Origin: Isurus oxyrinchus
Lineage: Eukaryota
Assembly: GCA_026770705.1 (NCBI GenBank)
Contig: JANJGN010000071.1
Coordinates: forward strand, 310,001-374,000
Length of the DNA stretch: 64,000 bases
Reading direction: 5' to 3'
The first letter of the stretch is position 1. Each line of letters starts with the position of its first letter. Below are positions 7,241 through 56,301 of this stretch, in pieces. The notes under the pieces were generated by a model. That model was not told the origin of the DNA and did no database searches. It worked only from the letters and a program-made list of their open reading frames with translations. Both the position numbers and the translations under genes were made by a program.

Positions 7241-9103
7241 GTGCAGCACCCCCTCAGTACTGACCCTCCGACTGTGCAGCACTCCCTCAGTACTGACTCT
7301 GACAATGCAGCACATCCTCAGTACTGACCCTCCAACAGTGCAGCACTCCCTCAAGACTGACCCTCTGACAATGCAACACTCCCTCAGTACTGACCCTCCG
7401 ACTGTGCATCCCCCCGCCGGTACTGACCCTTCGACAGTGCAACACTCCCTCAAGACTGACCCTCTGACAATGCAGCACTCCCTCAGTACTAACCCTCTGA
7501 CAATGCAGCACTCCCTCAGTACTGACCCTCTGACAATGCAGCACACCCTCAATACTGACCCTCCGATAGCTCGGTCATTCCTCAATTACGCCTGGTGGTC
7601 CTTTTAACTCAGAGCTGAGAGTCGCAGAGAATCGAGCAGACACCCTGAACTGACACTTGCAGTGCAAGTACTGGGAGCGCGCTGGTCATTATCATGCTGC
7701 TGTCTGTGGGATCTTACTGTGCGCCAATGGATGATTCTTTTCCCACATTACATCAGTGACCTCACATGAAAGAAAAAAGCACTTGATTGTCTGCGAAACA
7801 CTTTGGGACGTCCTGATGTGTTGGAAGGCGCTAGAGAAATGCAAGTCCTCTTTGTCTTTCACTCGATCCTCTAAGGTGTCTGTTGATTAACCAGCCTCTC
7901 GGTGTTTGATGTAGGCCTGGTTATAAACAGTTAGAAGGATCAAATATCAAAAGTGCTTTGGCTGACAGTCAAACCGATTGTGCATTCGGAGAGATTAGAT
8001 ATGGTCTGCACACAATGACTCCAGCCTCTGGCACTGACTGCCGCCTGGGGTCTCCCTTCCACATAACACTCACAACTTGCATTTACACAGCGCCTCTGGC
8101 ATTGCAAAATGTCCCAGCCCACATTACTGGAGCGTAAATCAGAGAGAAGTCCAACACTGAGTCACATATGGAGATATTAGGGTTAGGTGATCAAAAGCTT
8201 GGTCAAAGATGTCAGTTTTTAAGGAGCGTCTTAAAGGAGAGAGAGAGAGAGAGGCAGAGAGGTTAAGGGAGGGTATTCCGGAGCTCAGGGCCCCAGGCAG
8301 CTGAAGGCACGGCCACCAATGGTGGAGCGTTGGGAATCAGGGGGACCCGGGAGATGCAGTAATGTCAGAGATTTTGGAGGAACATCGGGACCGGAGGAGG
8401 TGTTCTCCTGCTCCATATCTCTCTCTCTCTTCCTCTCTTCCACTCCTCCTCTCCCTGTCTCTCTCTCTCCTACTCTTCCGCTCAATTGCCCTCTCTCCCA
8501 ATCTTTCTCTCCTCTCTCCCTTTTCCTGTCTCTCTCCCTCTCTCTCCCCTGTCTCCTTCTCCCACTCTGTATCTCTCCCTCTCTCTCACACTATTTTTGT
8601 ACCTTTCGCTCAGTCTGTAACTCTCCCTTTCCTGTTAATTTCTCTCTCTTGGACAATCTCTCTTCCCTTTTCACTTTCCCTCACTCTGCATCTCTTCTTT
8701 AATTTCTCCCTCTGTCACTCTCTCCCACCTATGTTCTTTCCCTTTCACCCCTCCCCGTCCCACTCTGTGTCTCTCTCTTCCAATCCCTCCCTCCCCCATT
8801 CCATCCCTCTCTCCGACTCTCGACTCCCAGCCTCTCTTTAACCCACTCCCAGGCTGGATCAGTCTCCCTCTCACTATTCCCGGCGTGGGTTACATTTATA
8901 ATTCCTGTGGGGATATGTTCACTTCCTTGGAATTGTCTCTTCCCAGCTTTGCAAAAAAAGGGGGCGGGGGGGTTCGATTTCAAACATGCCTCCTGAGTAT
9001 AACCGAGACAGACTGCCACTGAAATCAGCTTGAAATCAGAAAACTTTCTGTGGAAGAAACGAGCAGGGAGAAACCTTAAAATAAGGAATGAATTTCCACC
9101 TAC

Positions 9104-9160
9104 CGTGTCCGGGGAATCCACAGATTTCTCAATCGTCGAAGAACCTAAAGCAGTGTCAAC
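9104..9160 (-). CDS. HAMP: Hepcidin exon 2 (propiece VDTALGSSTIEKSVDSPDT)
   Basis: Polypyrimidine tract + tgcag acceptor, ACG|gtaggt donor, 57 nt, phase 0-0; similar in size and phase to vertebrate HAMP exon 2. Confidence 0.8.
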
Positions 9161-9914
9161 CTGCAAAAAGAAAGAATTTATCAGGGAGAAAGTGAGAGGA
9201 GGATTGAGGGAGAGGGAGAGAGAGAGAGAGAGGTACAGGAGAGAGAGGGGGAGGAGGACAGACTTGCATTTCTCTAACGCCTTTCACCACATCCCAAAGC
9301 ATTTCACAGCCACTGAAGGATGTTTTTGAAGTGCACTCACACTGTAGGAAATGTGGCAGCTGATTTGTGCACAGCAAGATCCCACAAATAGCAATGTGAT
9401 CATGGCCTAGATCATCTGTTTTTGGTGATGTTGGGTGAGGGATAAATATTGGTCCCAGGACACCGGGGAGAACACCCCCTGCTCTTCCTCCAAATAGTGG
9501 CTGTGGGATCTTTCACACCCGCCCGAGAGGGCAGACGGGGGACTCGGTTTAATGTCTCATTCAACATTGTTGTGCTCCCTCAGTACTAACCCTTTGACAC
9601 TGCAGCACTCCCTCAGTACTAACCCTTCGATAGTGCTGCACTCCCACAGTATTGTCCCTCCGTCAGTGCAGCGCTACCTCAGTACTGACCCTCCGACAGT
9701 GCAACACTTCCACAGTACTGACCCTGTAACAATGCAGCACTTCCTCAGTACTGACCTCCGACAGTATAGCACTCACTCAGTACTGTCCCTCCAATAGTGC
9801 AACACTTCCATACTACTGACCCTCTGACAGTCCAGCACTCCCTCAGCACGGAGTGTTGACCGACGTTATGGGACTGAATTCCCTGGAGTGAGACTCAGAC
9901 CAGAGATTTAGGTA

Positions 9915-10790
9915 GGGTTGTTCCGGCTGGAGGAGGTTACAGAGATAGGGAGGGTTGTAGAGGCTGTAGGAGGTAACAGAGATAGGGAGGGTTCTAGAGG
10001 CTGTAGGAGGTGACAGAGATAGGGAAGGTTGTAGGGGCTGTAGGAGGTTACAGAGATAGGGAGGTGAGTAGGGGCTGTAGGAGGTTAAAGAGATGGGGGG
10101 GTTGTGGGGGCTGGAGGAGGTTACAGAGGTAGGGAGGGTTGTAGAGGCTGGAGGAGGTTACCAAAATAGATACTGTTGTAGGGGCCACAGTAGGTTACAG
10201 AGATAGGGAGAGTTATAGTGTGGAGAGGACGTTATAGAGTTCATGAGCATTGTAGGGGCTGGAGGAGGTTACAGTGATTCTGAGGGTCGTGGGGCCTGGA
10301 GGAGGTTACAGAGATAGGGAGGGTTGTAGGGCCTGGAGGAGGTTACAGAGATAGGGAGGGTTGTAGGGTCTGGAGCAGGTTACAGAGATAGGGAGGGTTG
10401 TAGGGTCTAGAGGAGGTTACAGTGATCATGAGGGTTGTGGGGCCTGGGGGAGGTTACAGAGATAGGTAGGGTTGTAGGGGCTGGAGGAGGTTACAGAGAT
10501 AGGGAGGTTTATAGGGGCTGGAGGAGGTTACAGAGATAGGGAGGGTTGTAGGGGCTGGAGGAGGTTACAGAGATAGGGACAGTTGTAGGGGCTGGAGGAA
10601 GTTACAGAGATAGGGATTGTTGTAGGGGCTGGAGGAGGTTACAGATATAGGGAGGGTTGTAGCGGCTGGAGGAGGTTACAGAGATAGGGAGGGGTGTAGG
10701 GGCTGGAGGAGGTTACAGAGATAGGGAGGGTTGTAAGGCCTGGTGGAGGTTACAGAGATAGGGAGTGGCTGAGGAGGGATTGAAAACAAG
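9915..10790 (-). repeat. 37-bp minisatellite (CCCTCCCTATCTCTGTAACCTCCTCCAGCCCCTACAA) in hepcidin intron 1
   Basis: Tandem units; also 13375-13622, 44285-44530, 46280-48295. Confidence 0.95.
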
Positions 10791-10966
10791 AATGAGAATT
10801 TCAGGGGAAACGACAGAAGGAAATGATGTTAAATTCATAGAGGGCGACAATATTAAAGGCACGAACATAATAATATCAAACTGCGGAAGAGACCAGTCTA
10901 TCTGGGTGGTAGACGTAGAGTCATGTGCAAGAAACACCTCACCCAGAGGGACATCTCTTAGCTTAC

Positions 10967-11059
10967 CCTCGACAAGGAGAAGAAGTGACTCAGCTGCAGG
11001 GAGAGCAGCAAAGTCAGAGTGAACAAGACAAGTCGCCATTTCATCTGGGAGCTTCCCAT
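10967..11059 (-). CDS. HAMP: Hepcidin exon 1 (signal peptide MGSSQMKWRLVLFTLTLLLSLQLSHFFSLSR)
   Basis: ATG at 11059 in good Kozak context (gagATGG), second in-frame ATG at 11044; hydrophobic leader; 93 nt ending at phase-0 donor AGG|gtaagc; TATAAGA ~70 nt upstream. Confidence 0.85.
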
Positions 11060-11129
11060 CTCTGCCTGTCTCTTCTGATCTTCTGGCTCTGCTTTGATGC
11101 TTTGGTTTGTAACTAGAGGAGCTTCCTGC

Positions 11130-11320
11130 TCTTATACCTGAAACACTTGAAGGGGACAGCCGGGGGCGGGTTGCTGTGTGGTATCACACCCATTTCTGGA
11201 TATTGCAGTGTCGATGTTCCCTGTCCCACTGGCCTGGGACCAGCAGTAAGGTCACTGGGACATTGACTGTCTGGCACCGAGAACTATCAGTCCCTCCGCA
11301 ACGCCCTTCACCTTGTGCAA
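11130..11320 (-). promoter_or_regulatory. Hepcidin proximal promoter, complete copy: TATAAGA, GC box, variant BMP element GGTGCC+CAGAC, C/EBP-like TTGTGCAA
   Basis: TATA 11130-11136, GGGGCGGG 11163-11170, GGCACC (minus GGTGCC) 11273-11278 abutting a SMAD element, TTGTGCAA 11313-11320; motif matches only. Confidence 0.55.
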
Positions 11321-11689
11321 ATATGTGTTCATACTGATGCAACACAACATAGCAAAAACAGAGGGGCTGGTTCTTATGTCGGCAAATCAGGTGAACCGCA
11401 TGCCCCCTAACCCCTTACTCCTCTCATTGCTACACTTACTATTTTACAAATTGTGTGCGTTGCTTTTATTTTGGACAAGGGGCCTCGAGGGGGAACTGAT
11501 TTACGCTGAGGTTTAGGGGTTAACTGTTTACCATGTGGAGACTGTCTGTCACCAGCTTTGTTCATGGTTTATCCAGGAACATTGAAGGGCATGAACGTTC
11601 TTGCTTTGTATGGAACAAGTTACCAACTGGGTTCAGTCATCGACTCAGACTCACATCAACATAAACTGGCTTCTGACAGGTAAGTTTCT

Positions 11690-12300
11690 ATTACATGAGG
11701 GTAGGAGGAGGCCATTTGGCCCCTCGAGCCTGCTCCACCATTCAATGAGATCATGGCTGATCTGCAAACTAGCCCCATATGGCTTTGTCCCATCTCCTTT
11801 AATACCTTTGGATAACAAAAATCTATCAGTCTCACAGGTTTAAAATGAACAACTTGATCGTGCATCAGTTCCTGTTTGGGGAAGAGAGTTCCAAATTTCT
11901 CCCACCCTTTGTACTTCCTAATTTAATTCCTTTTTAGGCTCTGACCCCGAGTCCCAGACTCCCCCCAACCAGGGGAAATGGTTTCTCTTTATCGCCCCCG
12001 ATCTGTTCCCCTTATTATCATGTGAACTTTCATCAAATCTCCTGCTTAACATTCTAACTTCCAGGGAATACAAGCCGAGTTTGTGTTTAATCTCTCCTTG
12101 TGATTTAACCCTTGGAGTCCCGGTCTCATTCTGGTAAACTGACACTGCTCTCCCTCCGAGGTCAATATATCCTTCCTAAGGTGTGGGGCCCAGAATGTCT
12201 CACAGTGACTCCAGGTGTGGTCTAGCCAGGGCTTTATGTAGACTGAAGCATGACCTCTGCCCCCTTATATTCTAATCCGTGAGATAGAAAGGGCAGAGTT
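11690..12300 (-). mobile_element. CR1 LINE 3' fragment (mirror 44820-45430)
   Basis: GLEYKGAEVMLQ, KLGLYSLE..ML motifs. Confidence 0.7.
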
Positions 12301-13623
12301 CCAGAATTGTTGTGTTTATTCGACAACAGAATAACAGAGGAAGGTTTCCTCTCTGCCCTCTTCAGCCCCACTGGGAAGGTCAGGATGAGAAGGTTGGGCT
12401 GGGTCCCCTGTACTGGACACTCGCTGAATCTTCCAATGATAGTTCTGGGCTGGATTTCAAAACGCATAGACAAGGATTCAGTGTTCCATCACATTCTGCC
12501 TTTGTCTCTTTTCCTCTCGTTCTCTTTCTCTACCATCCTCTCTCTCTATCTATCTATCTTTCTCCTCATTCTCTCCTGCTTCATCTCTATCACTTTCTTT
12601 CTACTTCTTTGTGTGTCTCTGTCTGTCTCTCTCTCTCACTCTTTCTTTCCTTGTCCTTATCTCTTTCAGTGTCTCCCTCTTTCTCTCTCTCTCTCTCTCT
12701 CTAAATGTGCCCCTCTCTAACAGTTTGGCCCAGTACTCTTATTTCCCTGTTTTACTGGTGTTCCATTTGAAGGTATACAAGACCAGATCAGACCAGAATG
12801 TTTATTTTCCAGTGTTTACTGTGTTTTTTTCATTCTGGGTGTCTCTCGACTCTGTCTGTCCCTCTCTGTCCTTTTATTTCATTCTTTCATGTGATGTGGA
12901 CATCACTGCCTAGGCCAGCATTTATTGCCCAACCCTAACTGCCCTTGTTCAGAGGCCACTTTTTAAAAGTGAACCACATTGCTGTGGGTCTGGAGTCACA
13001 TGTAGGCCAGACCAGGTAAGGACAGCAGATTTCCCTCCCTAAAGGGCATTTGTGACCCAAATACAAGAATCAGCAATGGTTTCCTGGTCATCATCGGACT
13101 TTTAATTCCAGGTTTTTATTGAGTTCAAATTCCACCAACTGCTGTGGTGAGATTCTAACCAGGGTCCCAGGAGCATTACACTGGGTCTCTGGATTACTGG
13201 TCCAGTGAAAATACCATCAGGCCAACACCTCCCCACTCTTCCCTTCCACCATCTTTCACACTTGTTCTGTCTCTCTCTCACTCTCCTTCTCTCTTCTCCC
13301 TCTCTCAGTCTCTGTCTGTCTCTCAATCTCTCTATCGCTCTCTATCTCCTGGAGGCTCTCTCTCTGACTGTCTCCCTCCCTATATCTGTAACCTCCCCTC
13401 TCTCTCCCTTTCCTCCAGCCCCTACAACCCTCCCTAAGGCAGCCTCCACCTGCCTCTACAATCCTCCCCATCTCTGTAACCACCTTCAACCCCTACACCC
13501 CTCCCTATATCTGTAACCACCTCCAACCCCCACAACTCTCCCCATCTCTGTAACCACCTTCAACCCCTACACCCCTCCCTATACCTGTAACCTCCTCCAG
13601 CCCCTGTAACCCTCCCTATCTCT

Positions 13624-14854
13624 TGAAGGGTTCTCAAATTTCCCACATTTTCCACATCATCAACAAGGATATCACTTTTGCACCTTTAAACTGCTGAGTT
13701 AAGTGGAAAACCCTGCAGACAGGAGGCTGGGCCCATGAAGGCCTGGGGCTGCACATGTCCGGGCTTATTGAGAGCAGTGTGGAATGTTTGGCCTGAAACC
13801 AGACAACGAGAGGAGACAGAATACGCATTCTTCCCTTTAATACAATCAACCCAGAGAAAGACTTCACTTCACACGCAACTGAAGCCCATCTAAATCTTGC
13901 ATCAATAATCGCTCCTAACTTCTGAGGCCGGCAATTTAATTATGCGAACCCATCAATACTCCACACATACAATGGCTTTCAGTTCAAAACTAGTTACTGG
14001 GCAAGAAGACAATGATAAACATCATGCGAGCCCATTAACAACAACGAGACATCAATCACCTGGGGAAGCCCACCAAAGACAAACAAAGAACGAACCTTGA
14101 TTTGGATTGCGATAAGAAACTCGAAAGGCAGTATAACTGGGCAGTCAGTTGGGAGAGAAACCAGCCAGCAGAAGGGTTGCAGTGTTGAAAGCTGACACAG
14201 GGCAGTGAGCAGTTGGGAGCGGCTGAAGCAGAGTTTAAGCAAGGAGATCTGGAGGTTTGCAGGCCCACAGGCAACATCACGGTGAGGGGCACGGGGTGGC
14301 AGGCTCAACCGAAGACAACAAGGCCACAACCGCTGCCCTCCATGAAGATCGACCACCCACAACCGCGCCCTCCACCCAACTGAAGACCCTTCACAGATTC
14401 CACAGACCAGGACCACGTGGGGATGACAGGCCCCAGAGGACACTAAGAGCGTCCCCCAAAACTGCAACCGGCTTACCTGGCTGGATTTCCAACTGTCGAG
14501 GAACCCTGGGTTGGTGAGCGTGACCCCTGACCTCTCCTAGTGCAATTTAGTTAGGGATGGGGGGTGGGACAAGGGTAAGGGCATTAGTAGCGTGATTCTC
14601 CCTCGTTATGCCATGTGTTCCCTATTCTTAACTCAGTGTACTTTGTAAGTCTGTATAATCTCAGTGTCATCCTAATGTTAGAAGTTCATTTGTGACTTCA
14701 ATAAACTCAGTTTTTGTCTTGCACCAAAACCAGTTGTCTGCTGCACTTTGTGACAAGCCCCGAATAAGTCCAAGGTCTAGAACCCAGGGAGTGGGAGTGA
14801 TTCAGACGGCTCAGAAGTCGCAGGTGAAGCTGACACACACCACCACACCCTACA
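13624..14854 (+). mobile_element. Probable solo LTR ~1.2 kb (mirror ~43052-44282)
   Basis: TGAA start, CA end, AATAAA ~14700; sits between two different satellites; no TSD. Confidence 0.5.
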
Positions 14855-15265
14855 AGGGGCTGAATGGCCTCCTCCTGTTCCTGTGTAACGGGCATCAGTG
14901 GCTGAATGGGCCTCGTCCTTTTTCTGTGTAACAGGCTCAATGGGGCTGAATGGGCCTCCTCCTGTTCTTGTGTAACAGGCTCGAGGGGGCTGAATGGGCC
15001 TCCTCCAGTTCCTGTGTAACAGGCTTGAGGAGCTAAATGGGCCTCCTCCTGTTCCTGTGTAACAGACATCAGTGGCTGAATGGGCTTGCTCCTGTTCCTG
15101 TGTAACAGTCTTGAGGGGGCTGAATGGCCTCTTCCTGTATCTGTGTAACAGGCTCAATGGGCTGAATGGCCCCCTTCTGTTCCTGTGTAACAGTCTCGAG
15201 GGGGCTGAATGGGCCTCTTCCTGTTCCTGTGTAACAGGCTCAAGGGGCTGAATGGCCTCCTTCTG
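14855..15265 (-). repeat. 43-44-bp minisatellite (ACAGGAACAGGAGGAGGCCCATTCAGCCCCTCGAGCCTGTTAC); mirror 42725-43050
   Basis: Tandem units. Confidence 0.9.
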
Positions 15266-15504
15266 CTCTGTAAACTTGTTGTGATACTGTAACTGCCTCT
15301 TTGGTTTCATTCAGCTGAATCTTCAGCTCTTCAGTCTCTTCCTTGTATCTCTTGCCTTCCTCCTGGAACATTGGACATGGTTGGGTCTTCCCTGCCAACT
15401 GTTTCTTCAGTTTGCTCAGAGCGGCACAGAATTCGCTTTCTTTCTCTTCAGGATTTTCCAGTGGAACCAACTCTGACCTGAGGGACACTTGCAGCCTGTG
15501 AGGA

Positions 15505-16206
15505 TGCTTCAATTCTTCAAACTCATTCCGAGATACACTCTCATATTCCCCCAGCAACTCAGCAACTCCTCCAGTGAAACATTTCAGAGCAGCTGAGCTT
15601 GGTTTTCTGGAACCAGTCTCGGCCCAGAAGACTAGGGCCCTCACCTGTCGCTATGATCACTGGAAGCTGGGCTGTCTGCTGCCTGTAGGACACAGGTACT
15701 GGGATGAGGTCCTTTCCCTGTATGGATTCTCCAGTGTGTGTCTTCAGCTGATCCATTGTTGGCTCTAAATTCAGCGTCTGGGTTCCTTCATTTAGCTGTT
15801 TAAATGTGGGCTCTTCCACCACTGTGTCTGAGGCTCCCGTATCTGCCCCATTACTAGTGGCTGCCCATTCACTTGGGTTGTGATGGTTATAGGTTCAGTT
15901 TTTACCACTGTGACATTGGACAGGGAATAGACATCGGTATCAGCAGCTTCAGGCTCTGTGATATTATTCACTTCCATCATGTTGGTGCACTGCCTGATGG
16001 GCTGTCTCGATTTCACCCTGCATTGCTTTATTACCCGCCCCTTTCTTGTGGCAGTGATGGCATTCTGCCCCCTTGGACCTGCAGGTGTCCAGTACGTGCT
16101 CAATGCCCCCCACATCGAGAACAGACCAACTTCGGAGTTGCTGCTGAAATACTCCCACGAAGCCTTTTAGTTTCTGGAGCGGCAGAGACTGTCTCTCGCT
16201 TGGCGG

Positions 16207-16245
<39 letters not shown>

Positions 16246-16645
16246 GTTTGAGCCTCACGCCCGGTGGTTGTTTCCTGTCCCAGCTGAGGACTGGTGCCAT
16301 GTTGTACATCCTGTAAATCCCGCCAGTCTCTCCCAGCACTTTCCATGCCTGGCGCTATTTTCATGGAGCGCTTCAAATTGATGTCGGCTTCTGCGAGTAA
16401 ACGGCTCTGAATGGCGTTGAGGTGAACGACACAAACCAATCGGCCCCGCAACATGTCATTGAGTGTGTCTCCGAGGTCCCAGTGCTCAGTCACCTGCTTC
16501 CACTTCACTGTATAGGTTGCGATGGACTCTCCCTGGGCCCTTACTCTGGAGTTAAACTTAAACCTTTTCATTATTACCCACGGCTTCAGCTGAAAACACA
16601 TCTTCATGAGGTCGACTAATTGGTGAAAAAATTTAGAATTGGGTG
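15505..16645 (-). mobile_element. Gypsy (K02A2.6-like) gag-protease relic, left arm
   Basis: RFKFNSR, LNDMLRGRLVC, CCHC remnant, DTGAS, GPSLLGRDW. Confidence 0.85.
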
Positions 16646-17802
16646 CAATACATGTCACTGTCTTCAGCTCTGAGACTGTCAATCCTCACCAAACAATTCT
16701 TCCCTTCCAAGTCGCCGATTATTTTAGCACGTCCCACGAATGTGGCCACCCCATAATTGGGATCTTTGGTGTATGTGATGGTATATTTCCATCTATACCA
16801 ATATTTATACCAAGCTCCGTGCAGTGCTGTGTAAGAGTGGGAAGGAAAGTCAAAAAGCTACACGGAATAACCACACAAGAGCTGCTGATGGCCCTCCGAG
16901 GTAGCGCCTTCATAGACCATCCCTCTGACGTCACTCCTGAAAGGCAACAAGGGAGGGGACTGAACATCAAAAAGCAGAATATTACTTCAATGGAGAGAGT
17001 CTACAGAATGCGGTACAGAGGGATCTGGGTGTCCTTGTACATGAATCACAGAAAGTCAGCATTCAGGAACAGCACGGAATGAGGAAGGCAAGTGGAATGT
17101 TGGCCTTTATTGCAAAGGGATGGAGTATAAAAGGAGGGGAGTCTTGCTACAACTGTACAGGGCGTTGGTGAGATTGTATCAGGAGCAGTGTGTACAGTTC
17201 TGGTCTCCTTACTTAGGGAGGGATAGACTCTGCATTGGAGGCAGTTCAGAGGAGGTTCACTGGGCTGATTCCTGGGATGAAGGGGGTTTGTCTTATGAGG
17301 AAATGTTGAGCAGGTTGGGCCCTGTATCCATTGGAGTTTAGAAGAATGAGAGGTGATCTTATTGAAACATATAAGATTCTGAGGTGGTGGGGGGTTTGAC
17401 AGGGTGGATGCTGAGGGGATGTTACCCCTTGTGGGGGAATCCTGTGAAGCAATAAGGATGTTTTACTGCATTAAAGGTGCTATATAAATGCACTGTCATT
17501 CCTATTGAAACAAGCTCTCTGATGCACAAACAGAAAATGCTGGAAAAACACAGCAGGTCTGACAGCATCTGTGGAGAGAGCAACAGAGTTGGTGTTTCGA
17601 GTCCGTATGAGACTTTTGCTTTTGCTAAATTCTCTGACTCGCTATTCACTCACTCTCTGTGTGATCACTAACCCTGTTCTCTATAATTAAATGTTCACTT
17701 CCTCACTCCAGGAAAGAATCCAATTCCCTGAGTTCCGATCAGTAATGAATTTGTACCTTGCAGCAAGCTGATGAAGATCAATATCAGACCGACCTCTCCC
17801 AT
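16634..17802 (-). pseudogene. Siglec-like pseudogene, left arm: leader exon 17802-17757, V-set exon 16936-~16645
   Basis: Leader MGEVGLILIFISLLQ|gt; V-set SCVVIPCSF...GDLEGKNCLVRIDSLRAEDSD; 2-nt insertion frameshift at ~16852 (A5 vs A3 in the right copy); cut by Gypsy gag before the F-strand Arg. Confidence 0.85.
17025..17440 (+). mobile_element. CR1 LINE 3' fragment in pseudogene intron (mirror 40560-40980)
   Basis: MEYKRRGVLLQLYRALVR...CVQFWSPYL. Confidence 0.8.
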
Positions 17803-18065
17803 CTTCAGTTCCTCATCTAAATGGAAATGATAAAGACAGAGACTTTTTCAGAAATTGTCCCCAGCGTTTCTTCCTCAAACAACAACTTGTGGTTAAATGG
17901 CACCTTTCAGTGAGTTAAACAGCCCCAGGGAATAAACTAATGTCAAGACAAGGAAGGAGAGATTGAGAAGGGACATCGCAAACCAATTCACCAAACACGG
18001 CAAAAATTCATTGTTCCCTCACTCCCTGTGCTGGGTGTCCAGCTTTTTCTCTCAGTGAGTTTAGT

Positions 18066-20132
18066 CCTCACAATCTGTCTCTATCACACTCTTCTGCTCT
18101 ATCTCTCTCTCTCACACACACATTCTCTCTCTAACGCTCACAATCTGTCTCTATCACACTCTTCTGCTCTCTCTCTCTCTCTCTCACACACACACATTCT
18201 CTCTCTAACACTCACAATCTCTCTCTATCTCACTCTTCTGCTCTATCTCTCTCTCTCTCTCACACACATTCTCTCTCTAACACTCACAATCTCTCTCTAT
18301 CGCACTCTTCTGCTCTATCTCTCTCTCTCACACACACACACATTCTCTCTCTAACACTCACAATCTCTCTCTATCACACTCTTCTGCTCTATCTCTCGTT
18401 CACTCACACACATTCTCTCTCTAACACTCAATCTCTCTCAAATGCACTCTTCTGCTCTATCTCTCTCTCACACACACACATTCTCTCTCTAACACTCACA
18501 ATCTATCTCTATCGCACTCTTCTGCTCTATCTCTCTCTCTCACACACACACCTTCTCTCTAACACTCACAATCTCTCTCTATCACACTCTTCTGCTCTAT
18601 CTCTCTCTCTCACACACACACATTCTCTCTCTAACACTCACAATCTCTCTCTATCACACTCTTCTGCTCTATCTCTCTCTCTCACAAACACATGCTCTCT
18701 CTAACACTCACAATCTCTCTCGCACTTTTTTGCTGTATCTCTCTCTCTTTCACACACACACATTCTCTCTTTAACACTCACAATCTCTCTCTATCACACT
18801 CTTCTGCTCTATCTCTCTCACACACACACCTTCTCTCTCTAACAAACACAATCTCTCTCTATCGCACTCTACTGCTCTCTCTCTCTCTCTCACAAACACA
18901 ATCTCTCTCTATCGCACTCTTCTGCTCGCTCTCTCTCTCTCACACACACACATTCTCTCTCTAACACTCACAATCTCTCTCTATCGCACTCTTCTGCTCT
19001 ATCTCTCTCTCACACACATAATCTCTCTCTCTAACAATCACAATCTCTCTCTATCGCACTCTTCTGCTCTATCTCTCTCTCACACACACACATTCTCTCT
19101 CTAACACTCACAATCTCTCTCTATCACACTCTTCTGCTCTATATCTCTCTCTCTCTCACACACATTCTCTCTCAAACACTCACAATCTCTCTCTGTCACA
19201 CTCTTCTGCTCTATCTCTCTCTCTCACACACACATTCTCTCTCTAACACTAACAATCTCTATCACACTCTTCTGCTCTATCTCCTTCTCTCTCACACACA
19301 CACATTCTCTCTCTAACACTCACAATCTCTATCTATCGCACTCTTCTGCTCTATCTCTCTCTCTCACACACATTCTCTCTCTAACACTCACAATCTCTCT
19401 CTATCACACTCTTCTGCTCTAACTCTCTCTCTCACACACACACATTGTCTCTCTAACACTCACAATCTCTCTCTATCACACTCCTCTGCTCTCTCTCTCT
19501 CTCTCACACACACACATTCTCTCTCTAACACTCACAATCTCTCTCTATCACACTCCTCTGCTCTCTCTCTCTCTCTCACACACACACATTCTCTCTCTAA
19601 CACTCACAATCTCTCACTATCGCACTCTTCTGCTCTATCTCTCTCTCTCACACACACATTCTCTCTCTAACACTCACAATCTCTTTCTATCGCACTCTTC
19701 TGCTCTATCTCTCTCTCACACACACACATTCTCTCTCTAACAAACACAATCTCTCTCTATCGCACTCTTCTGCTCTATCTCTCTCTCTCTCACACACACA
19801 TTCTCTCTCTAACACTCACAATCTCTCTCTATCACACTCTTCTGCTCTCTCTCTCTCTCTCTCACACACACACATTCTCTCTCTAACACTCACAATCTCT
19901 CTCTATCACACTCTTCTGCTCTATCTCTCTCTCTCACACACACATTCTCTCTCTAACACTCACAATCTCTCTCTATCACAATCTTCTGCTCTCTCTCTCT
20001 CTCTCTCACACACACACATTCTCTCTCTAACACTCACAATCTCTCTCTATCACACTCTTCTGCTCTATCTCTCTCACACACACACACATTCTCTCTCTAA
20101 CACTCACAATCTCTCTCTATCGCAATCTTCTG

Positions 20133-20163
<31 letters not shown>

Positions 20164-21686
20164 TCTCTCTCTAACACTCACAATCTCTCTCTATCGCAAT
20201 CTTCTGCTCTCTCTCTCTCTCTCTCACACACACACATTCTCTCTCTAACACTCACAATCTCTCTCTATCACACTCTTCTGCTCTCTCTCTCTCACACACA
20301 CATTCTCTCTCTAACACTCACAATCTCTCTCTATCACACTCTTCTGCTCTATCTCTCTCTCTCACACACACACATTCTCTCTCTAACACTCACAATCTCT
20401 CTCTATCGCACTCTTCTGCTCTATCTCTCTCTCTCACACACATTCTCTCTCTAACACTCACAATCTCTCTCTATCACACTCTTCTGCTCTATCTCTCTCT
20501 CTCTCACACACACATTCTCTCTCTAACACTCACAATCTCGCTCTATCGCACTCTTCTGCTCTATCTCTCTCACACACACACATTCTCTCTCTAACACTCA
20601 CAATCTCTCTCTATCACACTCTTCTGCTCTATCTCTCTCTCTCACACACACATTCTCTCTCTATCACTCACAATCTCTATCACACTCTTCTGCTCTATCT
20701 CCCTCTCTCTCACACACACACATTCTCTCTCTAACACTCACAATCTCTATCTATCGCACTCTTCTGCTCTATCTCTCTCTCTCACACACATTCTCTCTCT
20801 AACACTCACAATCTCTCTCTATCACACTCTTCTGCTCTAACTCTCTCTCTCACACACACACATTGTCTCTCTAACACTCACAATCTCTCTCTGTCGCACT
20901 CTTCTGCTCTATCTCTCTCTCACACACACACACATTCTCTCTCTAACACTCACAATCTCTCTCTATCACACTCTTCTGCTCTATCTCTCTCTCACACACA
21001 CACATTCTCTCTCTAACACTCACAATCTCTCTCTATCACACTCCTCTGCTCTCTCTCTCTCTCTCACACACACACATTCTCTCTCTAACACTCACAATCT
21101 CTCTCTATCGCACTCTTCTGCTCTATCTCTCTCTCTCTCACACACACATTCTCTCTCTAACACTCACAATCTCTCTCTATCTCACTCTTCTGCTCTATCT
21201 CTCTCTCTCTCACACACATTCTCTCTCTAACAAACACAATCTCTCTCTATCGCACTCTTCTGCTCTCTCTCTCTCTCTCACACACACATTCTCTCTCTAA
21301 CACTCACAATCTCTCTCTATCACACTCTTCTGCTCTCTCTCTCTCTCTCTCACACACACACATTCTCTCTCTAACACTCACAATCTCTCTCTATCACACT
21401 CTTCTGCTCTATCTCTCTCTCTCACACACACATTCTCTCTCTAACACTCACAATCTCTCTCTATCACAATCTTCTGCTCTCTCTCTCTCTCTCTCACACA
21501 CACACATTCTCTCTCTAACACTCACAATCTCTCTCTATCGCACTCTTCTGCTCTCTCTCTCTCACACACACATTCTCTCTCTAACAATCACAATCTCTCT
21601 CTATAACACTCTTCTGCTCTATCTCTCTCTCTCTCACACACATTCTCTCTCTAACACTCACAATCTCTCTCTATCGCAATCTTCTG

Positions 21687-21718
<32 letters not shown>

Positions 21719-21904
21719 TTCTCTCTCTAACCCTCACAATCTCTCTCTATCACACTCTTCTGCTCTATCTCTCTCACACACACACACATTCTCTCTCTAA
21801 CACTCACAATCTCTCTCTATCACACTCCTCTGCTCTATCTCTCTCTCACACACACACACATTCTCTCTCTAACACTCACAATCTCTCTCTATCGCAATCT
21901 TCTG

Positions 21905-21937
<33 letters not shown>

Positions 21938-26100: not shown

Positions 26101-26299
26101 GACAGCGCCTCTACTGGTGGGAGAATGTAACTGTAGTTTGACTGTTTACATCGGCAGTGTCCATTATAAATTTGACAGTGGAAGTTATATGGAGGGAAGG
26201 TATCTGGAAATGCATACAGACATCAGATACAGAGAGATGATGCATGGAGTCTTGCTGTGCACGCTGCTTGCTCACATTAAACACTTGATTTGTTCTTAG

Positions 26300-27656: not shown

Positions 27657-27694
<38 letters not shown>

Positions 27695-38867: not shown

Positions 38868-38904
<37 letters not shown>

Positions 38905-41752: not shown

Positions 41753-41785
<33 letters not shown>

Positions 41786-45400: not shown

Positions 45401-45740
45401 AAATGGCCTCCTCCTACCTTTATGTAATAGAAACTTACCTGTCAGAAGCCAGTTTATGTTGATGTGAGTCTGAGTCGATGACTGAACCCAGTTGGTAACT
45501 TGTTCCATACAAAGCAAGAACGTTCATTTACCCACTGGTGGGTAAATCAGTTCCCCCTCGAGGCCCCTTGTCCGAAATAAAAGCAACGCACACAATTTGT
45601 AAAATAGTAAGTGTCTGGCAGGAAGGAGGAGCAATGAGAGGAGTAAGGGGTTAGGGGGCGTGCGCTTCACCTGATTTGCCGACATAAGAACCAGCCCCTA
45701 TGTTTTTGCTATGTTGTGTTGCATCAATATGAACACATAT

Positions 45741-45931
45741 TTGCACAAGGTGAAGGGCGTTGCGGAGGGACTGATAGTTCTCGGCGCCAGACAGTCAATG
45801 TCCCAGTGACCTTACTGCTGGTCCCAGGCCAGTGGGACAGGGAACATCGACACTGCAATATCCAGAAATGGGTGTGATACCACACAGCAACCCGCCCCCG
45901 GCTGTCCCCTTCAAGTGTTTCAGGTATAAGA
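45741..45931 (+). promoter_or_regulatory. Promoter of truncated hepcidin copy with intact BMP-responsive element GGCGCC+CAGAC
   Basis: GGCGCC 45783-45788 overlapping CAGAC, GC box ~45891, TATAAGA 45925-45931. Confidence 0.55.
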
Positions 45932-46001
45932 GCAGGAAGCTCCTCTAGTTACAAACCAAAGCATCAAAGCAGAGCCAGAAGATCAGAAGAGACAGGCAGA
46001 G

Positions 46002-49000
46002 ATGGGAAGCTCCCAGATGAAATGGCGACTTGTCTTGTTCACTCTGACTTTGCTGCTCTCCCTGCAGCTGAGTCACTTCTTCTCCTTGTCGAGGGTAAGT
46101 TAAGAGATGTCCCTCTGGGTGAGGTGTTTCTTGCACATGACTCTACGTCTACCACCCAGATAGACTGGTCTCTTCCGCAGTTTGATATTATTATGTTCGT
46201 GCCTTTAATATTGTCGCCCTCTATGAATTTAACATCATTTCCTTCTGTCATTTCCCCTGAAATTCTCATTCTTGTTTTCAATCCCTCCTCAGCGACTCCC
46301 TATCTCTGTAACCTCCACCAGGCCTTACAACCCTCCCTATCTCTGTAACCTCCTCCAGCCCCTACACCCCTCCCTATCTCTGTAACCTCCACCAGGCCTT
46401 ACAACCCTCCCTATCTCTGTAACCTCCTCCAGCCCGTACAACCCTCCCTATCTCTGTAAACTCCTCCAGCCCCTACAACCCTCCCTATCTCTGTAACCTC
46501 CACCAGGCCTTACAACCCTCCCTATCTCTGTAACCTCCTCCAGCCCCTACACCCCTCTCTATCTCTGTAACCTCCTCCAGCCCCTACAACCCTCCCTATC
46601 TCTGTAACTTCCTCCAGCCCCTACAACCCTCCCTATCTCTGTAACCTCCTCCAGCCCGTACAACCCTCCCTATCTCTGTAACCTCCTCCAGCCCCTACAA
46701 CCCTCCCTATCTCTGTAACCTCCTCCCGCCCCTACAACCCTCCCTATCTCTGTAACATCCTCCAGCCCCTACAACAATCCCTATCTCTGTAACATCCTAC
46801 AGTCTCTACAACCCTCCCTATCTCTGTAACCTCCTCCAGTCCCTATAACCCTCCCTATCTCTGTAACCTCCTCCAGACCCGACAACCCTCCCTATCTATG
46901 TAACCTCCTACAGTCCCCACAACACTCCCTATCTCTGTAACCTCCCCCAGGCCCCACAACCCTCACGATCACTGTAACCTCCTCCAGACCCTACAACCCT
47001 CCCTATAACTCAGAATATTTGACAGTTTTACACACGGACAGCTTTGCCTTCCTTCTCTCTTTCAGTTATCTTGCTCCCTTATTGAAGTATCTAGCAAGGT
47101 GAGAATGGACAGGAAGTGTGACACTGAACAGCCTGTCTATTCTAGGAGCTGCTGTGTTGTCTTCATGGGAAATTCTGACTAAAATCAGCAAAAGACACTA
47201 ATTTCAGGCCATTGCTGTCAGAGTCCTAGCCACAAGATAGACTTCATCCCCTGAATTTTGTGTCCGATTTTCCACTCAAGCTTTCACCTCCGCACACACC
47301 CACCCCGACCCCACAAGTCACTCGCTGACCTACACTGGCTCCCAGTCCAACAACACCTCGATGTGATTATTTTCACACTTGATTTCCAATCCCTCCATCA
47401 CTCCGCTCCACTCCGTGTCTCTGTAACCTACTCAAACCTACAACCCTCTGTGATCTCTGCACTCCCCCAATTCTGCTGTCAGACAGGGAGTCAGTGTATA
47501 TCAGTGAGCACAGGGGTGATGGGTGAATGGGACTTGGTGTGAGTTTGTGCACTGGGTCACTGCTGAATTGGTTCCGAATCACAGCTCAATAAGAATGACC
47601 TCAATAACCTCCTCCAGCCCCTACAACCTTCCCTATCTCTGTAACCTGCTCCAGACCCTACAACCCTCCCTATCTCTGTAACCTGCTCCAGACCCTACAA
47701 CCCTCCCTATCTCTGTAACCTGCTCCAGACCCTACAACCCTCCCTATCTCTGTAACCTGCTCCAGACCCTACAACCCTCCCTATCTCTGTAAAATCCTCC
47801 AGGCCCCACAACCCTCACAATCACTGTAACCTCCTCCAGCCCCTACATCCTCCTGAACTCTATAAGCTCCTCTCCACACTATAACTCTCCCTATCTCTGT
47901 AACCTACTGTGGCCCCTACAGCAGTGTCTATTTTGGTAACCTCCTCCAGCCTCTACAACCCTCCCTACATCTGTAACCTCCTCCAGCCCCCACAACTCCC
48001 CCATCTCTGTAACCTCCTACAGCCTCTACAACCCTCCCTATCTCTGTAACTTCCTACAGCCCTTACAACCCTCCCTATCTCTGTAACCTCCTACAGCCTC
48101 TACAGCCCTCCCTATTTCTGTAACCTCCTCCAGCCCCTACAACCCTCCCTATCTCTGTAACCTCCTACAGCCTCTACAACCCTCCCTATCTCTGTAACTT
48201 CCTAGAGCCCTTACAACCCTCCCTTTCTCTGTAACCTCCTACAGCCTCTACAGCCCTCCCTATCTCTGTAACCTCCTCCAGCCCCCACAACCCTACCTAA
48301 ATCACTGGTCTGAGTCTCACTCCAGGGAATTCAGTCCCATAATGTAGATCAACGCTCTGTGCTGAGGGAGTGCTGCACTCTCAGAGGGTCAGTAGTGTGG
48401 AAGTGTTGCACTATTGGAGGGACAGTACTGAGGGAGTGCTATACTGTCGGAGGTCAGTACTGAGGGAGTGCTGCTGTGTCGAAGGGTTAGTACTGAAATA
48501 GAGCTGCACTGACGGAGGGACAGTACTGAGGGAGCGCAGCACTGACGGAGGGACAATACTGTGGGAGTGCAGCACTATCGAAGGGTTAATACTAAGGGAG
48601 TGCTGCAGTGTCAAAGGGTTAGTACTGAGGGAGCACAACAATGTTGAATGAGACATTAAACTGAGTCCCCCGTCTGCCCTCACGGGCGGGTGTGAAAGAT
48701 CCCACAGCCACTATTTGGAGGAAGAGCAGGGGGTGTTCTCCCCGGTGTCCTGGGACCAATATTTATCCCTCAACCAACATCACCAAAAACAGATGATCTA
48801 GGCCATGATCACATTGCTATTTGTGGGATCTTGCTGTGCACAAATCAGCTGCCACATTTCCTACAGTGTGAGTGCACTTCAAAAACATCCTTCAGTGGCT
48901 GTGAAATGCTTTGGGATGTGGTGAAAGGCGTTAGAGAAATGCAAGTCTGTCTTCCTCCCCCTCTCTCTCCTGTACCTCTCTCTCTCTCTCTCCCTCTCCC

Positions 49001-49104
49001 TCAATCCTCCTCTCACTTTCTCCCTGATAAATTCTTTCTTTTTGCAGGTTGACACTGCTTTAGGTTCTTCGACGATTGAGAAATCTGTGGATTCCCCGGA
49101 CACG
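46002..49104 (+). pseudogene. HAMP: Truncated hepcidin duplicate: exon 1 (46002-46094) and exon 2 (49048-49104), no exon 3
   Basis: Both exons identical to the left copy with intact splice sites; homology ends at 49843 inside intron 2, followed by a Gypsy integrase fragment. Confidence 0.85.
47013..47597 (+). repeat. Direct copy of 54973-55556 (gene B intron 1) inserted in the right-arm hepcidin intron 1
   Basis: Near-identical ~585 bp, absent from the left arm. Confidence 0.88.
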
Positions 49105-49879
49105 GTAGGTGGAAATTCATTCCTTATTTTAAGGTTTCTCCCTGCTCGTTTCTTCCACAGAAAGTTTTCTGATTTCAAGCTGATTTCAGTGGCAGTCTGT
49201 CTCGGTTATACTCAGGAGGCATGTTTGAAATCGAGCCCCCCCCCCCTTTTTTTGCAAAGCTGGGAAGAGACAATTCCAAGGAAGTGAACATATCCCCACA
49301 GGAATTTTAAATGTAACCCACGCCGGGAATAGTGAGAGGGAGACTGATCCAGCCTGGGAGTGGGTTAAAGAGAGGCTGGGAGTCGAGAGTCGGAGAGAGG
49401 GATGGAATGGGGGAGGGAGGGATTGGAAGAGAGAGACAGAGAGTGGGACGGGGAGGGGTGAAAGGGAAAGAACATAGGTGGGAGAGAGTGACAGAGGGAG
49501 AAATTAAAGAAGAGATGCAGAGTGAGGGAAAGTGAAAAGGGAAGAGAGATTGTCCAAGAGAGAGAAATTAACAGGGAAGGGAGAGTTACAGAGTGAGCGA
49601 AAGGTACAAAAATAGTGTGAGAGAGAGGGAGAGATACTGAGTGGGAGAATGAGACAGGGAGAGAGAGAGAGAGAGAGACAGGAAAAGGGAGAGAGGAGAG
49701 AAAGATTGGGAGAGAGGGCAATTGAGAGGAAGAGTAGGAGAGAGAGAGACAGGGAGAGGAGGAGTGGATGAGAGGAAGAGAGAGAGATATGGAGCAGGAG
49801 AACACCTCCTCTGGTCCCGATGTTCCTCCAAAATCTCTGACATGACTCGAAGACTTTCAACCAGTGAATAAAAATTGTT

Positions 49880-50792
49880 CCAAACCACCTGAGACCACAG
49901 CCCTTAGTTACTATTCAGCACTTCATCACCCATATCAAACCCTCACCCTACCGCCCAGCATCGAACGGCAGGGCTGAGCAGGGCATCCAAACCTTTAAAT
50001 CCAGGGTGAGAAAGATGGAAGGGGATTCCATCGGCACGAGATTGTCCCGGTTCCTCTTCACAAACTGGGCCAGGCCACAAACAACGACCAGCATTGGCCC
50101 TGCAGAACTACTAATGAAGAGACATCTCCGCACCCACCTGACCCTTATCCAGCCGGATTTAAAGGGGAGGCTGGAGAAAAGCCAAGAGACGCAGGAGACC
50201 AGGCACGATGGTCATGCTGGGAAAGAACTTTCACTGTGGGAGGTGCAGTCCTCGCGATGAACTATGGAGATGGGTCCAATTGGCTGTTAGGCGAGGTGAG
50301 TGCAGTAACTGGATCCCTCTCCTCTCATGTATCAGTAAACGACACGTGGATCATTTCCCCAAAATAACGCTGGTCCCACAAGAAGAAATGAAGTCTTCAT
50401 CTCCACTTGAGTCTGTGCCTCATGTAGAGGACAGGTCCCAAAATTTGGAAGGAGCAACATTCGAGAAAGCCTCCTGAGAGACTTGATTTGTAAATAGTTA
50501 TTAGTGTAATTAGTTCACTGGTTATTAAGTTTGTCAACTGCACTTTTTAAGTAAAGGGGGAAGGATGTGGTAAAGTGGAGTTCCTTGTACAGTTAAGAGA
50601 ATGCAAGTGGATAAACCATGTGACAGTGCTGCCCAATCATTGTACAGTGCGGGCTACTGGTTAACTGTAAGTCTAGAGCTGGAGGTGAGTGTGGGAACAT
50701 GCAAGGATTTAGTGCTCTGCCCTCTTGCAATAAATAATCAGCTTGTTCTAATGTCGGTCTCTCTTGGTTATTGATAGCGAGCATCAACTAAC
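49880..50792 (+). mobile_element. Gypsy integrase fragment, polypurine tract and short 3' LTR
   Basis: ASNGRAEQGIQTFK...RLSRFLF...PAELLM; aaagggggaagga followed by TGT at 50566. Confidence 0.75.
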
Positions 50793-54377: not shown

Positions 54378-54746
54378 CAGAAACGTGAAGCCGGGTTACA
54401 GGGTAATAGTTATGGCTCGGACCATTGTCAAATTCTATTCTGAAAAAATAAGGTCCTGCATCTTCCCGTCTGATGTTGTTTATAATCAGGGAACAGTCGC
54501 CATCTTTCAGGTCTCCAGACAGCCGGGTCCGATGGTGGAACCGTGGTAACTCGTGACTGTGATCCTTGGAGTGAAAGGCAATGGGAGCCCAGGGAATCTG
54601 TTTCTCATTATTAAACCAGACTCCACCTCGCGGTTGGTTTTCCAGACACGATGGATAACTGTAATGACATGGAATCTGTACACACGAACCTTCCTGCACT
54701 GTCACCTCTCGTGGAGTTTCACCTTTCCACTCTTGTGACAGTCCAA
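54378..54746 (-). CDS. Siglec V-set sialic-acid-binding domain exon (gene B)
   Basis: 369 nt, phase 1-1; W near N-terminus, SCVQIPC, GDCSL and YFFRIE with the essential Arg: Siglec signature. Confidence 0.92.
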
Positions 54747-55571
54747 CTGTGGAGAGAAATATCAATATTTAACCCTGGATCCTCATTGTCTAAGGGATTA
54801 TTTCTGATCCAAACCCCATATTGTTGTATTGTTGATTCCGATGCAGCATTGTAGACTGACTTGTCCCCAAGCTCAGCACTGACCCTACTCCAGCAGAGAC
54901 TGTGAAACACACTAACAAAGTGCCTCTAGCCTGAGCTCTGCATGTGTCGAGAGAAAGACAAATATACAAACTGAATATTGACACCTTTACACACGGACAG
55001 CTTTACCTTCCTTCTCTCTTTCAGTTATCTTGCTCCCTTATTGAAGTATCTAGCAAGGTGAGAATGGACAGGAAGTGTGACACTGAACAGCCTGTCTATT
55101 CTAGGAGCTGCTGTGTTGTCTTCATGGGAAATTCTGACTAAAATCAGCAAAAGACACTAATTTCAGGCCATTGCTGTCAGAGTCCTAGCCACAAGATAGA
55201 CTTCATCCCCTGAATTTTGTGTCCAATTTTCCACTCAAGCTTTCACCTCCGCACACACCCACCCCGACCCCACAAGTCACTCGCTGACCTACACTGGCTC
55301 CCAGTCCAACAACACCTCGATGTGATTATTTTCACACTTGATTTCCAATCCCTCCATCCCTCCGCTCCACTCCCTGTCTCTGTAACCTCCTCAAACCTAC
55401 AACCCTCTGTGATCTCTGCACTCCCCCAATTCTGCTGTCAGACAGGGAGTCAGTGTATATCAGGGAGCACAGGGGTGATGGGTGAATGGGACTTGGTATG
55501 AGTTTGTACACTGGCTCACTGCTGAATCGGTTCCCTATCAGAGCTCAATAAGAATGGTCTTATACAAACAC

Positions 55572-56301
55572 TATTAACCATAAATCTGTCCAAGCTGACG
55601 ATGATATTACCTTGGAGAAGTGACAGGAGGAAGTAAGATTTCCCGATCATCGTCCACTCCCAGATATTCCTTTAGCTTCTGACTCTCAAACTCTGAAAGA
55701 GAAAGGAGTTAATGAGACCTCACCTCTTGTCCGACAGCTCTCGAGAGATCAGAACTGCTTTTAGACAATGTCCTCTGAGACTAATTTGGTTCTCTGTGGG
55801 ATGACAGGTGCTCTGCAGAGAGTTAAAAAGCTTTAAAAAAATTAATCAATGAAGGACTTGCATTTCTATATCGCCTTTCACCACCTCAGGATGTCCCAAA
55901 GCTCATGTCCCTGCTCTTCCATCATCCCTTGAGCTAGAAAGATGTTCTGTACAACAGACTTGAGCCTCACACCCAGATCTCAATAATCAGTAGAAATCTT
56001 TCAAAGGCATCAATCATTGGAATCTGTCTTTATAAAGTCACAACATCAACAAAGGACGGTGTTGGTCGTGGAAGTGAATTCCAATCGTTCCGTTACTTAC
56101 CCAGGACCTGTCCGACTGCTCGCCTGGGGAGGAACTGCCCACACGCTCTGCTTGGGCTGAATGACCTCTTCCTGTGCTGCTCCCTCTGTGTATTTAATGA
56201 GAAAGGGTTGATGTGTCACTGTGAGACAAAATGAGGAAGTTGCATCAAAGTGACAGAACAGCTCGTGTTTTGAGTTTTTTGAAGCTGTTAACCCTTTGCG
56301 T
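55572..56301. repeat. Inverted repeat pair with 63044-63778 (promoter, UTR exon and leader of genes B and C)
   Basis: 56030-56185 is nearly identical to the reverse complement of ~63165-63330; flanks more diverged. Confidence 0.88.
55611..55650 (-). CDS. Siglec-like gene B leader exon (MIGKSYFLLSLLQ)
   Basis: 40 coding nt, CAAG|gtaata phase-1 donor; acceptor at 55692; probable non-coding exon ending tgg|gtaagt at ~56101. Confidence 0.8.

Follow-up and report, generated by a model that had tools for sequence, protein, structure and literature searches.

The window analysed was a 64,000-nucleotide stretch of the lamniform shark Isurus oxyrinchus (assembly GCA_026770705.1, contig JANJGN010000071.1, positions 310,001 to 374,000). 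It contained Siglec exons on both strands and two hepcidin copies, arranged in and around a long inverted duplication. The left arm of the duplication was located at 8362-25669 (~17.3 kb) and comprised a core (8362-18620), a 70/72-bp minisatellite (18067-22730) and a diverged inner part ending at ~25575-25669. Its inverted copy, the right arm, occupied 37192-49843 (~12.7 kb); both arms are given without strand. The high-identity core aligned from 8362-18620 on the left to 49843-39387 on the right. Across the cores, 108 of 7287 non-satellite positions differed (1.48% divergence, 98.5% identity); core identity reached 99.7%, and the longest identical stretch between the arms was 828 bp. The outer edge was sharp at 8362/49843. 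Beyond the 70-bp minisatellite, weaker homology resumed (left 23068-25575 against right 39227-37290, 83-95% identity) and stopped in a CA microsatellite.

Arm-specific indels comprised 785 bp found only on the left and 1037 bp found only on the right, the latter including a 585-bp insertion (47013-47597). On the strength of these indels and the 1.48% divergence, the arms were treated as two genomic copies and not as one locus assembled twice. Two haplotypes of a single locus were also considered and ruled out, as there are four distinct arm/unique junctions and each lies within gap-free sequence. Long, near-identical inverted repeats are thereby placed around a unique segment of ~11.5 kb, the configuration looked for in an NAHR inversion. 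Identity was uneven along the arms, at 0-14 mismatches per 500 columns (chi-square p = 0.001). We infer from this patchiness, which suggests gene conversion, that the arms still recombine, and for that reason the orientation of the spacer may vary between individuals.

The complete hepcidin gene was located on the minus strand at 6660-11059 (exon 1, 11059-10967; exon 2, 9160-9104; exon 3, 6770-6660), with the arm edge at 8362 falling in its intron 2. Its product is an 86-aa prepropeptide encoded by three exons with phases 0-0, in which a furin site (RQKR) is followed by 27 aa containing eight cysteines. The Pfam Hepcidin score of exon 3 was 26.9 bits, just under the cut-off of 27, and exon 2 was assigned by splice-site scan alone. 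A protein search with exon 3 returned no match. The truncated copy, which ends without an exon 3, was found on the plus strand at 46002-49104 (exon 1, 46002-46094; exon 2, 49048-49104). Each arm also carried the dead 5' end of a MAG-like Siglec. The left copy (16606-17802, minus strand) has its leader starting at 17802 and a V exon that is truncated by retroelement-like ORFs and carries a frameshift. The right copy (40198-41362, plus strand) has the same leader and truncated V exon, for which the Pfam V-set match was below threshold. The transposon ORFs likewise gave only sub-threshold Pfam matches, so that retroelement-like and transposon-like serve here as weak labels.

The spacer between the arms (25670-37191, no strand assigned, ~11.5 kb) carried a Siglec 3' module on the plus strand. 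Its first exon (26300-26581) is an intact C2-type exon of phase 1-1 with Pfam Ig_3/I-set matches and splice sites, and is 94-96% identical to Siglec repeats of Carcharodon and Cetorhinus. It is the first of three tandem copies. The second (27336-27616, 281 nt) is a pseudo-exon that has lost 1 nt after the acceptor and has Ser in place of the conserved Cys, and the third (28412-28693) is again intact by Pfam and splice sites. These are followed by a transmembrane exon (RDSSKWTVGLFTAGIMLSVFLAGIFIFICVRK; 29503-29599, phase 1-2), a short cytoplasmic exon (RKTAMEERVSG...; 30661-30742, phase 2-0) and a terminal cytoplasmic exon (31791-32039) with an ITIM (LFYANI), an ITSM-like motif (TEYAQI) and the stop codon. 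The C2-set domains (C2-set_2/Ig_3 matches), transmembrane segment and ITIM/ITSM-like motifs by which an inhibitory Siglec is recognised are all present, but on the strand opposite to the V exon.

That V exon belongs to a Siglec 5' half in the right flank, on the minus strand. The leader exon (MIGKSYFLLSLLQ; 55650-55611) is identical to the leader of the annotated relative P0005. The V-set exon (54746-54378; Pfam V-set, E = 4e-12; Ig_CD22, E = 1e-8) retains, in the motif YFFRIE, the essential arginine (YFFR) predicted to serve in sialic acid recognition. The first C2-set exon (53062-52766; Pfam C2-set_2) is 94% identical to P0005 and has a phase-1 donor after 52766. A further piece (49848-50094, minus strand) abuts the right arm and lies antisense to a transposon-like ORF. 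A Siglec is expected as one transcript from one strand; in the assembly its 5' exons lie on the minus strand at 52.8-55.7 kb and its 3' exons on the plus strand at 26.3-32.0 kb. When 226 family proteins were searched against the window, no further Siglec exon was found on the required strand. Elsewhere in the window a head-to-head leader pair was noted (55548-56301 and 63802-63044), as was a plus-strand pair of ITAM-like terminal exon and head type at 60272-60388 and 63700.

This layout agrees with an earlier note on the same DNA, which had described long, similar inverted arms at 8362-25600 and 37190-49843, limits that the arm alignments bear out. It had also described a spacer with only the 3' half of a Siglec on the plus strand (C2 exons, transmembrane segment and ITIM/ITSM tail, the middle C2 exon now being recognised as dead), a Siglec with only a 5' half (leader, V and C2 exons) on the minus strand just beyond the right arm, and a second hepcidin promoter with a single exon 3. 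That exon was found only at 6770-6660 on the minus strand, and promoter and exons 1-2 in both arms.

The note had further proposed that the two halves are phase-compatible, join as VLYAPQNL and would be brought together by one inversion. Donor 52766 and acceptor 26300 were both found to be phase 1, as described. The match in phase says little by itself, because every Ig exon in the family is phase 1-1. The junction is of more use; ...TV(L/Q)|YAPQNL is the norm in the family, as seen in P0005 and P0082. The geometry also holds, in that one inversion between the arms would place the donor 16-21 kb upstream of the acceptor on the same strand. The resulting order, leader-V-C2-C2-C2-TM-cyt-ITIM/ITSM, is the exact architecture of the annotated relatives P0162, P0157, P0160 and P0082. 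A basking-shark (Cetorhinus) gene model, P0071, has a homologue of the right-flank piece (50094-49938, minus strand) joined on one strand to sequence just upstream of such a C2 exon; P0071 is a paralogous unit whose orthology is not proven, its tail is of a different type and the shared piece is transposon-derived, which makes this comparative evidence indirect. Because the C2-to-C2 junction is the family norm and P0071 has the two parts on one strand, the halves probably originated as one compact gene. The closest database proteins to the window exons were from Carcharodon and Cetorhinus (91-97% identity), and in protein searches with the exons queried singly no database protein was 100% identical to any of them. 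Both halves are fully open at an arm divergence of ~1.5%, an observation no less compatible with recent or ongoing use than with a split gene that is dead.

The same junction can be read in another way, in which nothing was split. The spacer exons would then be the 3' half of a plus-strand Siglec whose leader, V and D2 exons lie to the left of the window, with hepcidin nested antisense in an intron of ~27 kb, and the leader-V-C2 exons on the right would be a truncated copy. Any D2-type exon would yield the same phase-1 ...|YAPQNL junction. Family genes of this architecture, however, look compact, and in P0071 it is the right-flank piece, and not a distant head, that stands upstream of such a C2 exon. 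We regard an unsplit gene as rather unlikely.

Assembly error was weighed against the position of the gaps. N runs were present at 35578-35798 and 35872-36102, in the CA-rich microsatellite of the spacer, and at 39230-39386, in the 70-bp minisatellite of the right arm. No reading frame is at stake in these runs, since no exon lies near them, and the order across 39230-39386 agrees with that of the gap-free left arm. A flip of the entire right-hand contig was tried and rejected, as it did not improve gene order. An error of narrower scope would leave the arms real but the orientation of the spacer, or the join across 35578-36102, wrong, or the assembler may have swapped the arms in their near-identical core; in that event the Siglec would be intact in the true genome, with a 16-21 kb intron that contains the right arm. 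All three N runs lie beyond the Siglec 3' exons, in the spacer or in the right arm itself, and the only link from the gene-bearing part of the spacer to the right-arm contigs crosses the runs at 35578-36102. Flipping the spacer alone gives a complete gene of normal family architecture from two undamaged halves, and an assembler could be misled by a core that reaches 99.7% identity and includes an identical run of 828 bp. Against this, a single gap-free stretch (1-35577) runs from the left flank through the left arm to the 3' exons of the Siglec, the inner parts of the arms beside the spacer are 5-17% diverged and hard to mix up, and with identical runs below 1 kb, reads of a few kb can separate the arms. 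Such an error is improbable, though the likeliest of the alternatives considered here. It would mark a spot where the reference and the gene annotation derived from it are wrong.

The earlier note had also raised a somatic flip-flop that would toggle the inhibitory Siglec while choosing between two hepcidin promoters. An inversion could place either promoter before exon 3, and to that extent promoter choice is geometrically possible. It nevertheless looks empty, because the copies do not differ at all in exons 1-2, 5'UTR or core promoter, and differ by just eight substitutions from -100 to -500. One of these falls within a BMP-element-like site (GGTGCC in the left copy, GGCGCC in the right) and is, with the geometry, what speaks for a switch. 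Programmed inversion would be expected to use short sites, and no RSS-like heptamer/nonamer pair was detected on either strand of the window (at least 6/7 heptamer and at least 7/9 nonamer matches, spacers of 12 or 23 nt, each ±1 nt), nor is there a recombinase context. The arms themselves are long, diverged, laden with satellite and littered with pseudogene debris, unlike short recombinase sites. To our knowledge, no programmed inversion over 10-kb repeats exists in vertebrates. The somatic proposal is unsupported and a regulated flip-flop is highly improbable; the locus is most likely germline structural variation and not a regulated switch.

The reading that we favour, at about an even chance, is that a recent inverted segmental duplication was accompanied by an inversion that split a Siglec gene within a Siglec/hepcidin cluster. 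The duplicated piece would be DNA that formerly lay downstream of a compact, ~12-kb inhibitory Siglec gene and contained the dead MAG-like 5' end together with the hepcidin promoter and exons 1-2. Its second copy would lie, inverted, in the intron that separates the first C2 exon of the Siglec from the repeated ones. The assembled orientation of the DNA between the copies would then separate the 5' exons (minus strand) from the 3' exons (plus strand), and in that orientation, we infer, the two halves do not give rise to a full receptor. This could have arisen in one step, by staggered breaks that inverted the segment and duplicated its flank, or in two, by inverted duplication and subsequent homologous recombination between the arms.

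Known systems offer partial parallels. In the F8 intron-22 (int22h) inversion of human haemophilia A, recombination takes place between a ~10-kb intronic repeat and its inverted copy beyond the gene. The intervening segment flips and leaves the 5' and 3' halves on opposite strands, and a second exchange would restore the gene. On the favoured reading, the shark locus would resemble it in that a repeat lies inside an intron, a segment flips and a gene is cut into opposite-strand halves. It differs in scale and state; at F8, hundreds of kb separate the copies and inversion gives a rare disease allele, whereas the shark spacer is ~11.5 kb and the assembly has the split state. On the best reading the duplication would, as at F8 intron 22, still be prone to re-inversion. 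The human 19q13 region holds a HAMP-MAG-CD22 neighbourhood, and the shark hepcidin likewise adjoins MAG/CD22-type Siglecs. In humans and apes, recurrent inversions have been traced to inverted repeats of 5.6-37.6 kb in a study that also mentions 'the inversion causing hemophilia' (Aguado et al. 2014, PMC3961182). The shark arms are in the same size class with high identity, and toggling and gene conversion would be expected, but both orientations were genotyped in those cases and the shark locus is known from one assembled orientation. Inverted duplications at inversion breakpoints have been explained by staggered breaks (Ranz et al. 2007, PMC1885836). The shark arms would similarly bound an inverted segment with inverted copies of one breakpoint's flank, which take in a partial gene, namely hepcidin exons 1-2; outgroups proved the ancestral state in that Drosophila work, whereas the shark outgroup is a single paralogous gene model. 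SIGLEC11 and SIGLEC16 form a head-to-head pair subject to gene conversion (PMC5701461), and are comparable as inverted Siglec duplicates, a few kb from each other, between which sequence passes; the head-to-head leaders in the shark window add to the likeness. SIGLEC11 and SIGLEC16, however, are two complete genes with opposite signalling, and the shark arms carry only the dead MAG-like 5' end and partial hepcidin. Neither a Tandem Repeats Finder run nor the literature on shark Siglecs and shark hepcidin yielded anything specific to the locus.

An extension of the favoured inversion, which we consider unlikely, is that it segregates and recurs as a germline toggle. The 3' module would complete the right-hand head on the minus strand in one orientation, or serve a plus-strand head left of the window in the other, and the two hepcidin upstream regions, which differ slightly, could be swapped with it. 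The ligand-binding head connected to the inhibitory tail, where there is one at all, would vary from animal to animal. If the split itself is real, the locus would be a clean case from a non-mammalian vertebrate of an immune-receptor gene cut by inversion between long inverted duplicates, with both halves intact so that one exchange could repair the gene. It would provide a simple locus for genotyping an inversion polymorphism, and would show how 'headless' signalling modules and truncated hepcidin copies originate in shark Siglec/hepcidin clusters.

A large inverted repeat was present in the window on self-comparison, and alignment together with this comparison upheld the arm limits proposed in the earlier note: a left arm of approximately 17.3 kb (8362 to about 25669), a right arm of approximately 12.7 kb (about 37192 to 49843) and a spacer of approximately 11.5 kb. 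The outer edge of the arms was sharp (8362/49843). Global alignment of the arm core, left 8362-18620 against right 49843-39387, gave 98 to 99.8% substitution identity in most 500-column bins, with arm-specific indels of 785 bp (left only) and 1037 bp (right only). With satellites excluded, 108 of 7287 aligned columns diverged (1.48%). Mismatches were patchy (chi-square p = 0.001): a 500-column stretch held anywhere between 0 and 14 of them, and the longest run identical between the arms was 828 bp. On the spacer side of a 70/72-bp minisatellite (4.6 kb on the left; 0.5 kb plus an N run on the right), arm homology resumed at 83 to 95% (left 23068-25575 versus right 39227-37290) and subsequently petered out in a CA microsatellite. 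Sequence was gap-free at all four arm/unique junctions and each arm carried private indels; the arms are therefore two genuine copies, and the same features ruled out two haplotypes of one locus.

Other repeats were also recorded. A 33-bp minisatellite occurred at at least six sites, on both strands (57-542, 7238-7566, 25000-25358, 30955-31231, 37502-38353 and 56466-56777), and a 43-bp satellite was repeated at 14855-15265, 42733-43051 and 61725-63015; these arrays produced many spurious repeat matches. A 585-bp piece found only in the right arm (47013-47597), within the hepcidin intron-1 minisatellite, was 97% identical in direct orientation to 54973-55556, which lies 8 kb away in the intron between Siglec leader and V exon. 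The piece showed no clear target-site duplication; it could be a dispersed repeat, or else a templated insertion.

Siglec exons were located on both sides of the right arm. Adjoining it on the right, on the minus strand, were an intact leader exon (55650-55611; MIGKSYFLLSLLQ), an intact V-set exon retaining the essential Arg (54746-54378; Pfam V-set and Ig_CD22) and an intact C2-set exon (53062-52766; Pfam C2-set_2), each with splice sites. The spacer carried, on the plus strand, a 1.05-kb unit in three tandem copies with one C2-type exon each. The first (26300-26581) and third (28412-28693) were intact; the second (27336-27616) was a pseudo-exon, lacking 1 nt and having Ser in place of the conserved Cys. 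These were followed by a transmembrane (TM) exon (29503-29599), a short cytoplasmic exon (30661-30742) and a terminal exon containing LFYANI and TEYAQI (31791-32039). Spacer exon phases were, in order, 1-1, 1-1, 1-2, 2-0 and 0-stop. A search of 226 family proteins against the window revealed no further Siglec exon on the strand needed by either half. Protein searches used single exons as queries, and no database protein identical to any window exon was found. A second inverted duplication (55548-56301 versus 63802-63044, 89.6% identity) covered the leader and upstream exons of each of two Siglec genes arranged head to head, namely the minus-strand head described above and a plus-strand gene (leader 63700-63738) leaving the right end of the window.

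Phase compatibility of the two halves is weak evidence that they formed one gene, because every Ig exon here is phase 1-1. Relatives gave better evidence and bore out the C2/C2 junction predicted in the earlier note: annotated Siglecs of Carcharodon, Cetorhinus and Mustelus (P0005, P0082, P0157, P0160 and P0162) are arranged as leader, V(n), C2, repeated C2(n), TM, cytoplasmic exon and tail, and show ...TV(Q/L)|YAPQNL. The most informative match was to P0071, a Cetorhinus maximus gene model whose residues 1-52 matched window positions 50094-49938 (minus strand) at approximately 92%. The C2 donor lies 2.7 kb upstream of this piece, which abuts the right arm on its outer side. After residue 52, P0071 matched the sequence immediately upstream of the 26300 exon (plus strand) and then carried a C2 exon of the spacer type, TM and tails. 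Since all parts of a gene model share a strand, the two matched sequences are collinear in C. maximus; in the window they lie on opposite strands, separated by 23.6 kb. P0071 represents a paralogous unit and is not a demonstrated orthologue, because the matched piece at 50094-49938 overlaps a transposon-like ORF in antisense and the tail of P0071 is of another type. Flipping the spacer would give a compact Siglec gene of approximately 12 kb, followed on the same strand by a MAG-like remnant and hepcidin.

The spacer module might instead serve a plus-strand Siglec head left of the window, across an intron of approximately 27 kb. This arrangement was considered quite improbable. The window contains three N runs. 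The first two (35578-35798 and 35872-36102) sit in CA-rich microsatellite, and are separated by a 73-base CA-rich island. They matter because nothing else joins the part of the spacer that carries genes to the right-arm contigs; an error of spacer orientation in the assembly was judged unlikely. The third (39230-39386) sits in the 70-bp minisatellite, and order and orientation across it match the gap-free left arm. Every N run is at least 0.8 kb from the nearest exon, so reading frames are unaffected. Overall, the most likely account of the locus is an inverted duplication in the germline, accompanied by an inversion that broke a Siglec gene in two.

The layout is that of an inversion with the flank of one breakpoint present, as inverted copies, at both of its ends. 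The nearest functional analogue is the F8 intron-22 inversion. Such a layout could have arisen by one route in a single step, staggered breaks being known to yield an inversion bounded by inverted flank copies (PMC1885836). In a two-step route, inverted duplication into a Siglec intron would have been followed by recombination between the copies. Inverted repeats of the same size and identity class as these arms drive recurrent human and ape inversions (PMC3961182). The patchy arm identity fits gene conversion between the arms. Nothing indicates the somatic or regulated flip-flop that had been suggested: no RSS-like sites were found in the window, and the arms are long, decaying duplicates packed with satellites and pseudogene debris. 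The observation in the earlier note stood, and its interpretation was supported in part.

A complete hepcidin gene was present on the left only, on the minus strand (exon 1, 11059-10967; exon 2, 9160-9104; exon 3, 6770-6660). Its 86-aa product contains RQKR, after which comes a peptide of 27 aa with 8 Cys. The mature peptide (6660-6770, minus strand; MGRFCRFCCNCCNSRESNETCGLCCRY) has an extended loop and an N-E-T sequon and is without the usual N-terminal motif. Because the arm boundary falls inside hepcidin intron 2, the right arm has hepcidin sequence from the promoter through exon 2 (exons at 46002-46094 and 49048-49104, plus strand) and lacks exon 3. For the proposed hepcidin promoter choice, the geometry was correct (crossover between 8362 and about 11270), but the two copies are identical across exons 1-2, 5'UTR and core promoter. 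Eight substitutions and some indels were present at -100 to -500, among them GGTGCC at 11273-11278 in the complete copy versus GGCGCC at 45784-45789 in the truncated copy.

Both arms also carried the leader and V exon of a separate MAG-like Siglec. The V exon is truncated by retroelement-like ORFs, a label for which Pfam support was below threshold, and the left copy is additionally frameshifted. An orphan ITAM-like terminal exon (60272-60388, plus strand; KKDEKDLEMKSNRGVNPDTDDDLYANCDFAKDSVYGNL and stop) has a phase-0 acceptor, and the truncated hepcidin has a phase-0 donor (after 49104) on that strand 11 kb upstream. Given the matching phase, shared strand and 11-kb distance, a hepcidin-Siglec-tail chimera spliced from the 49104 donor to this exon is possible. 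Such a chimeric transcript, if made, would cross the Siglec 5' half antisense.
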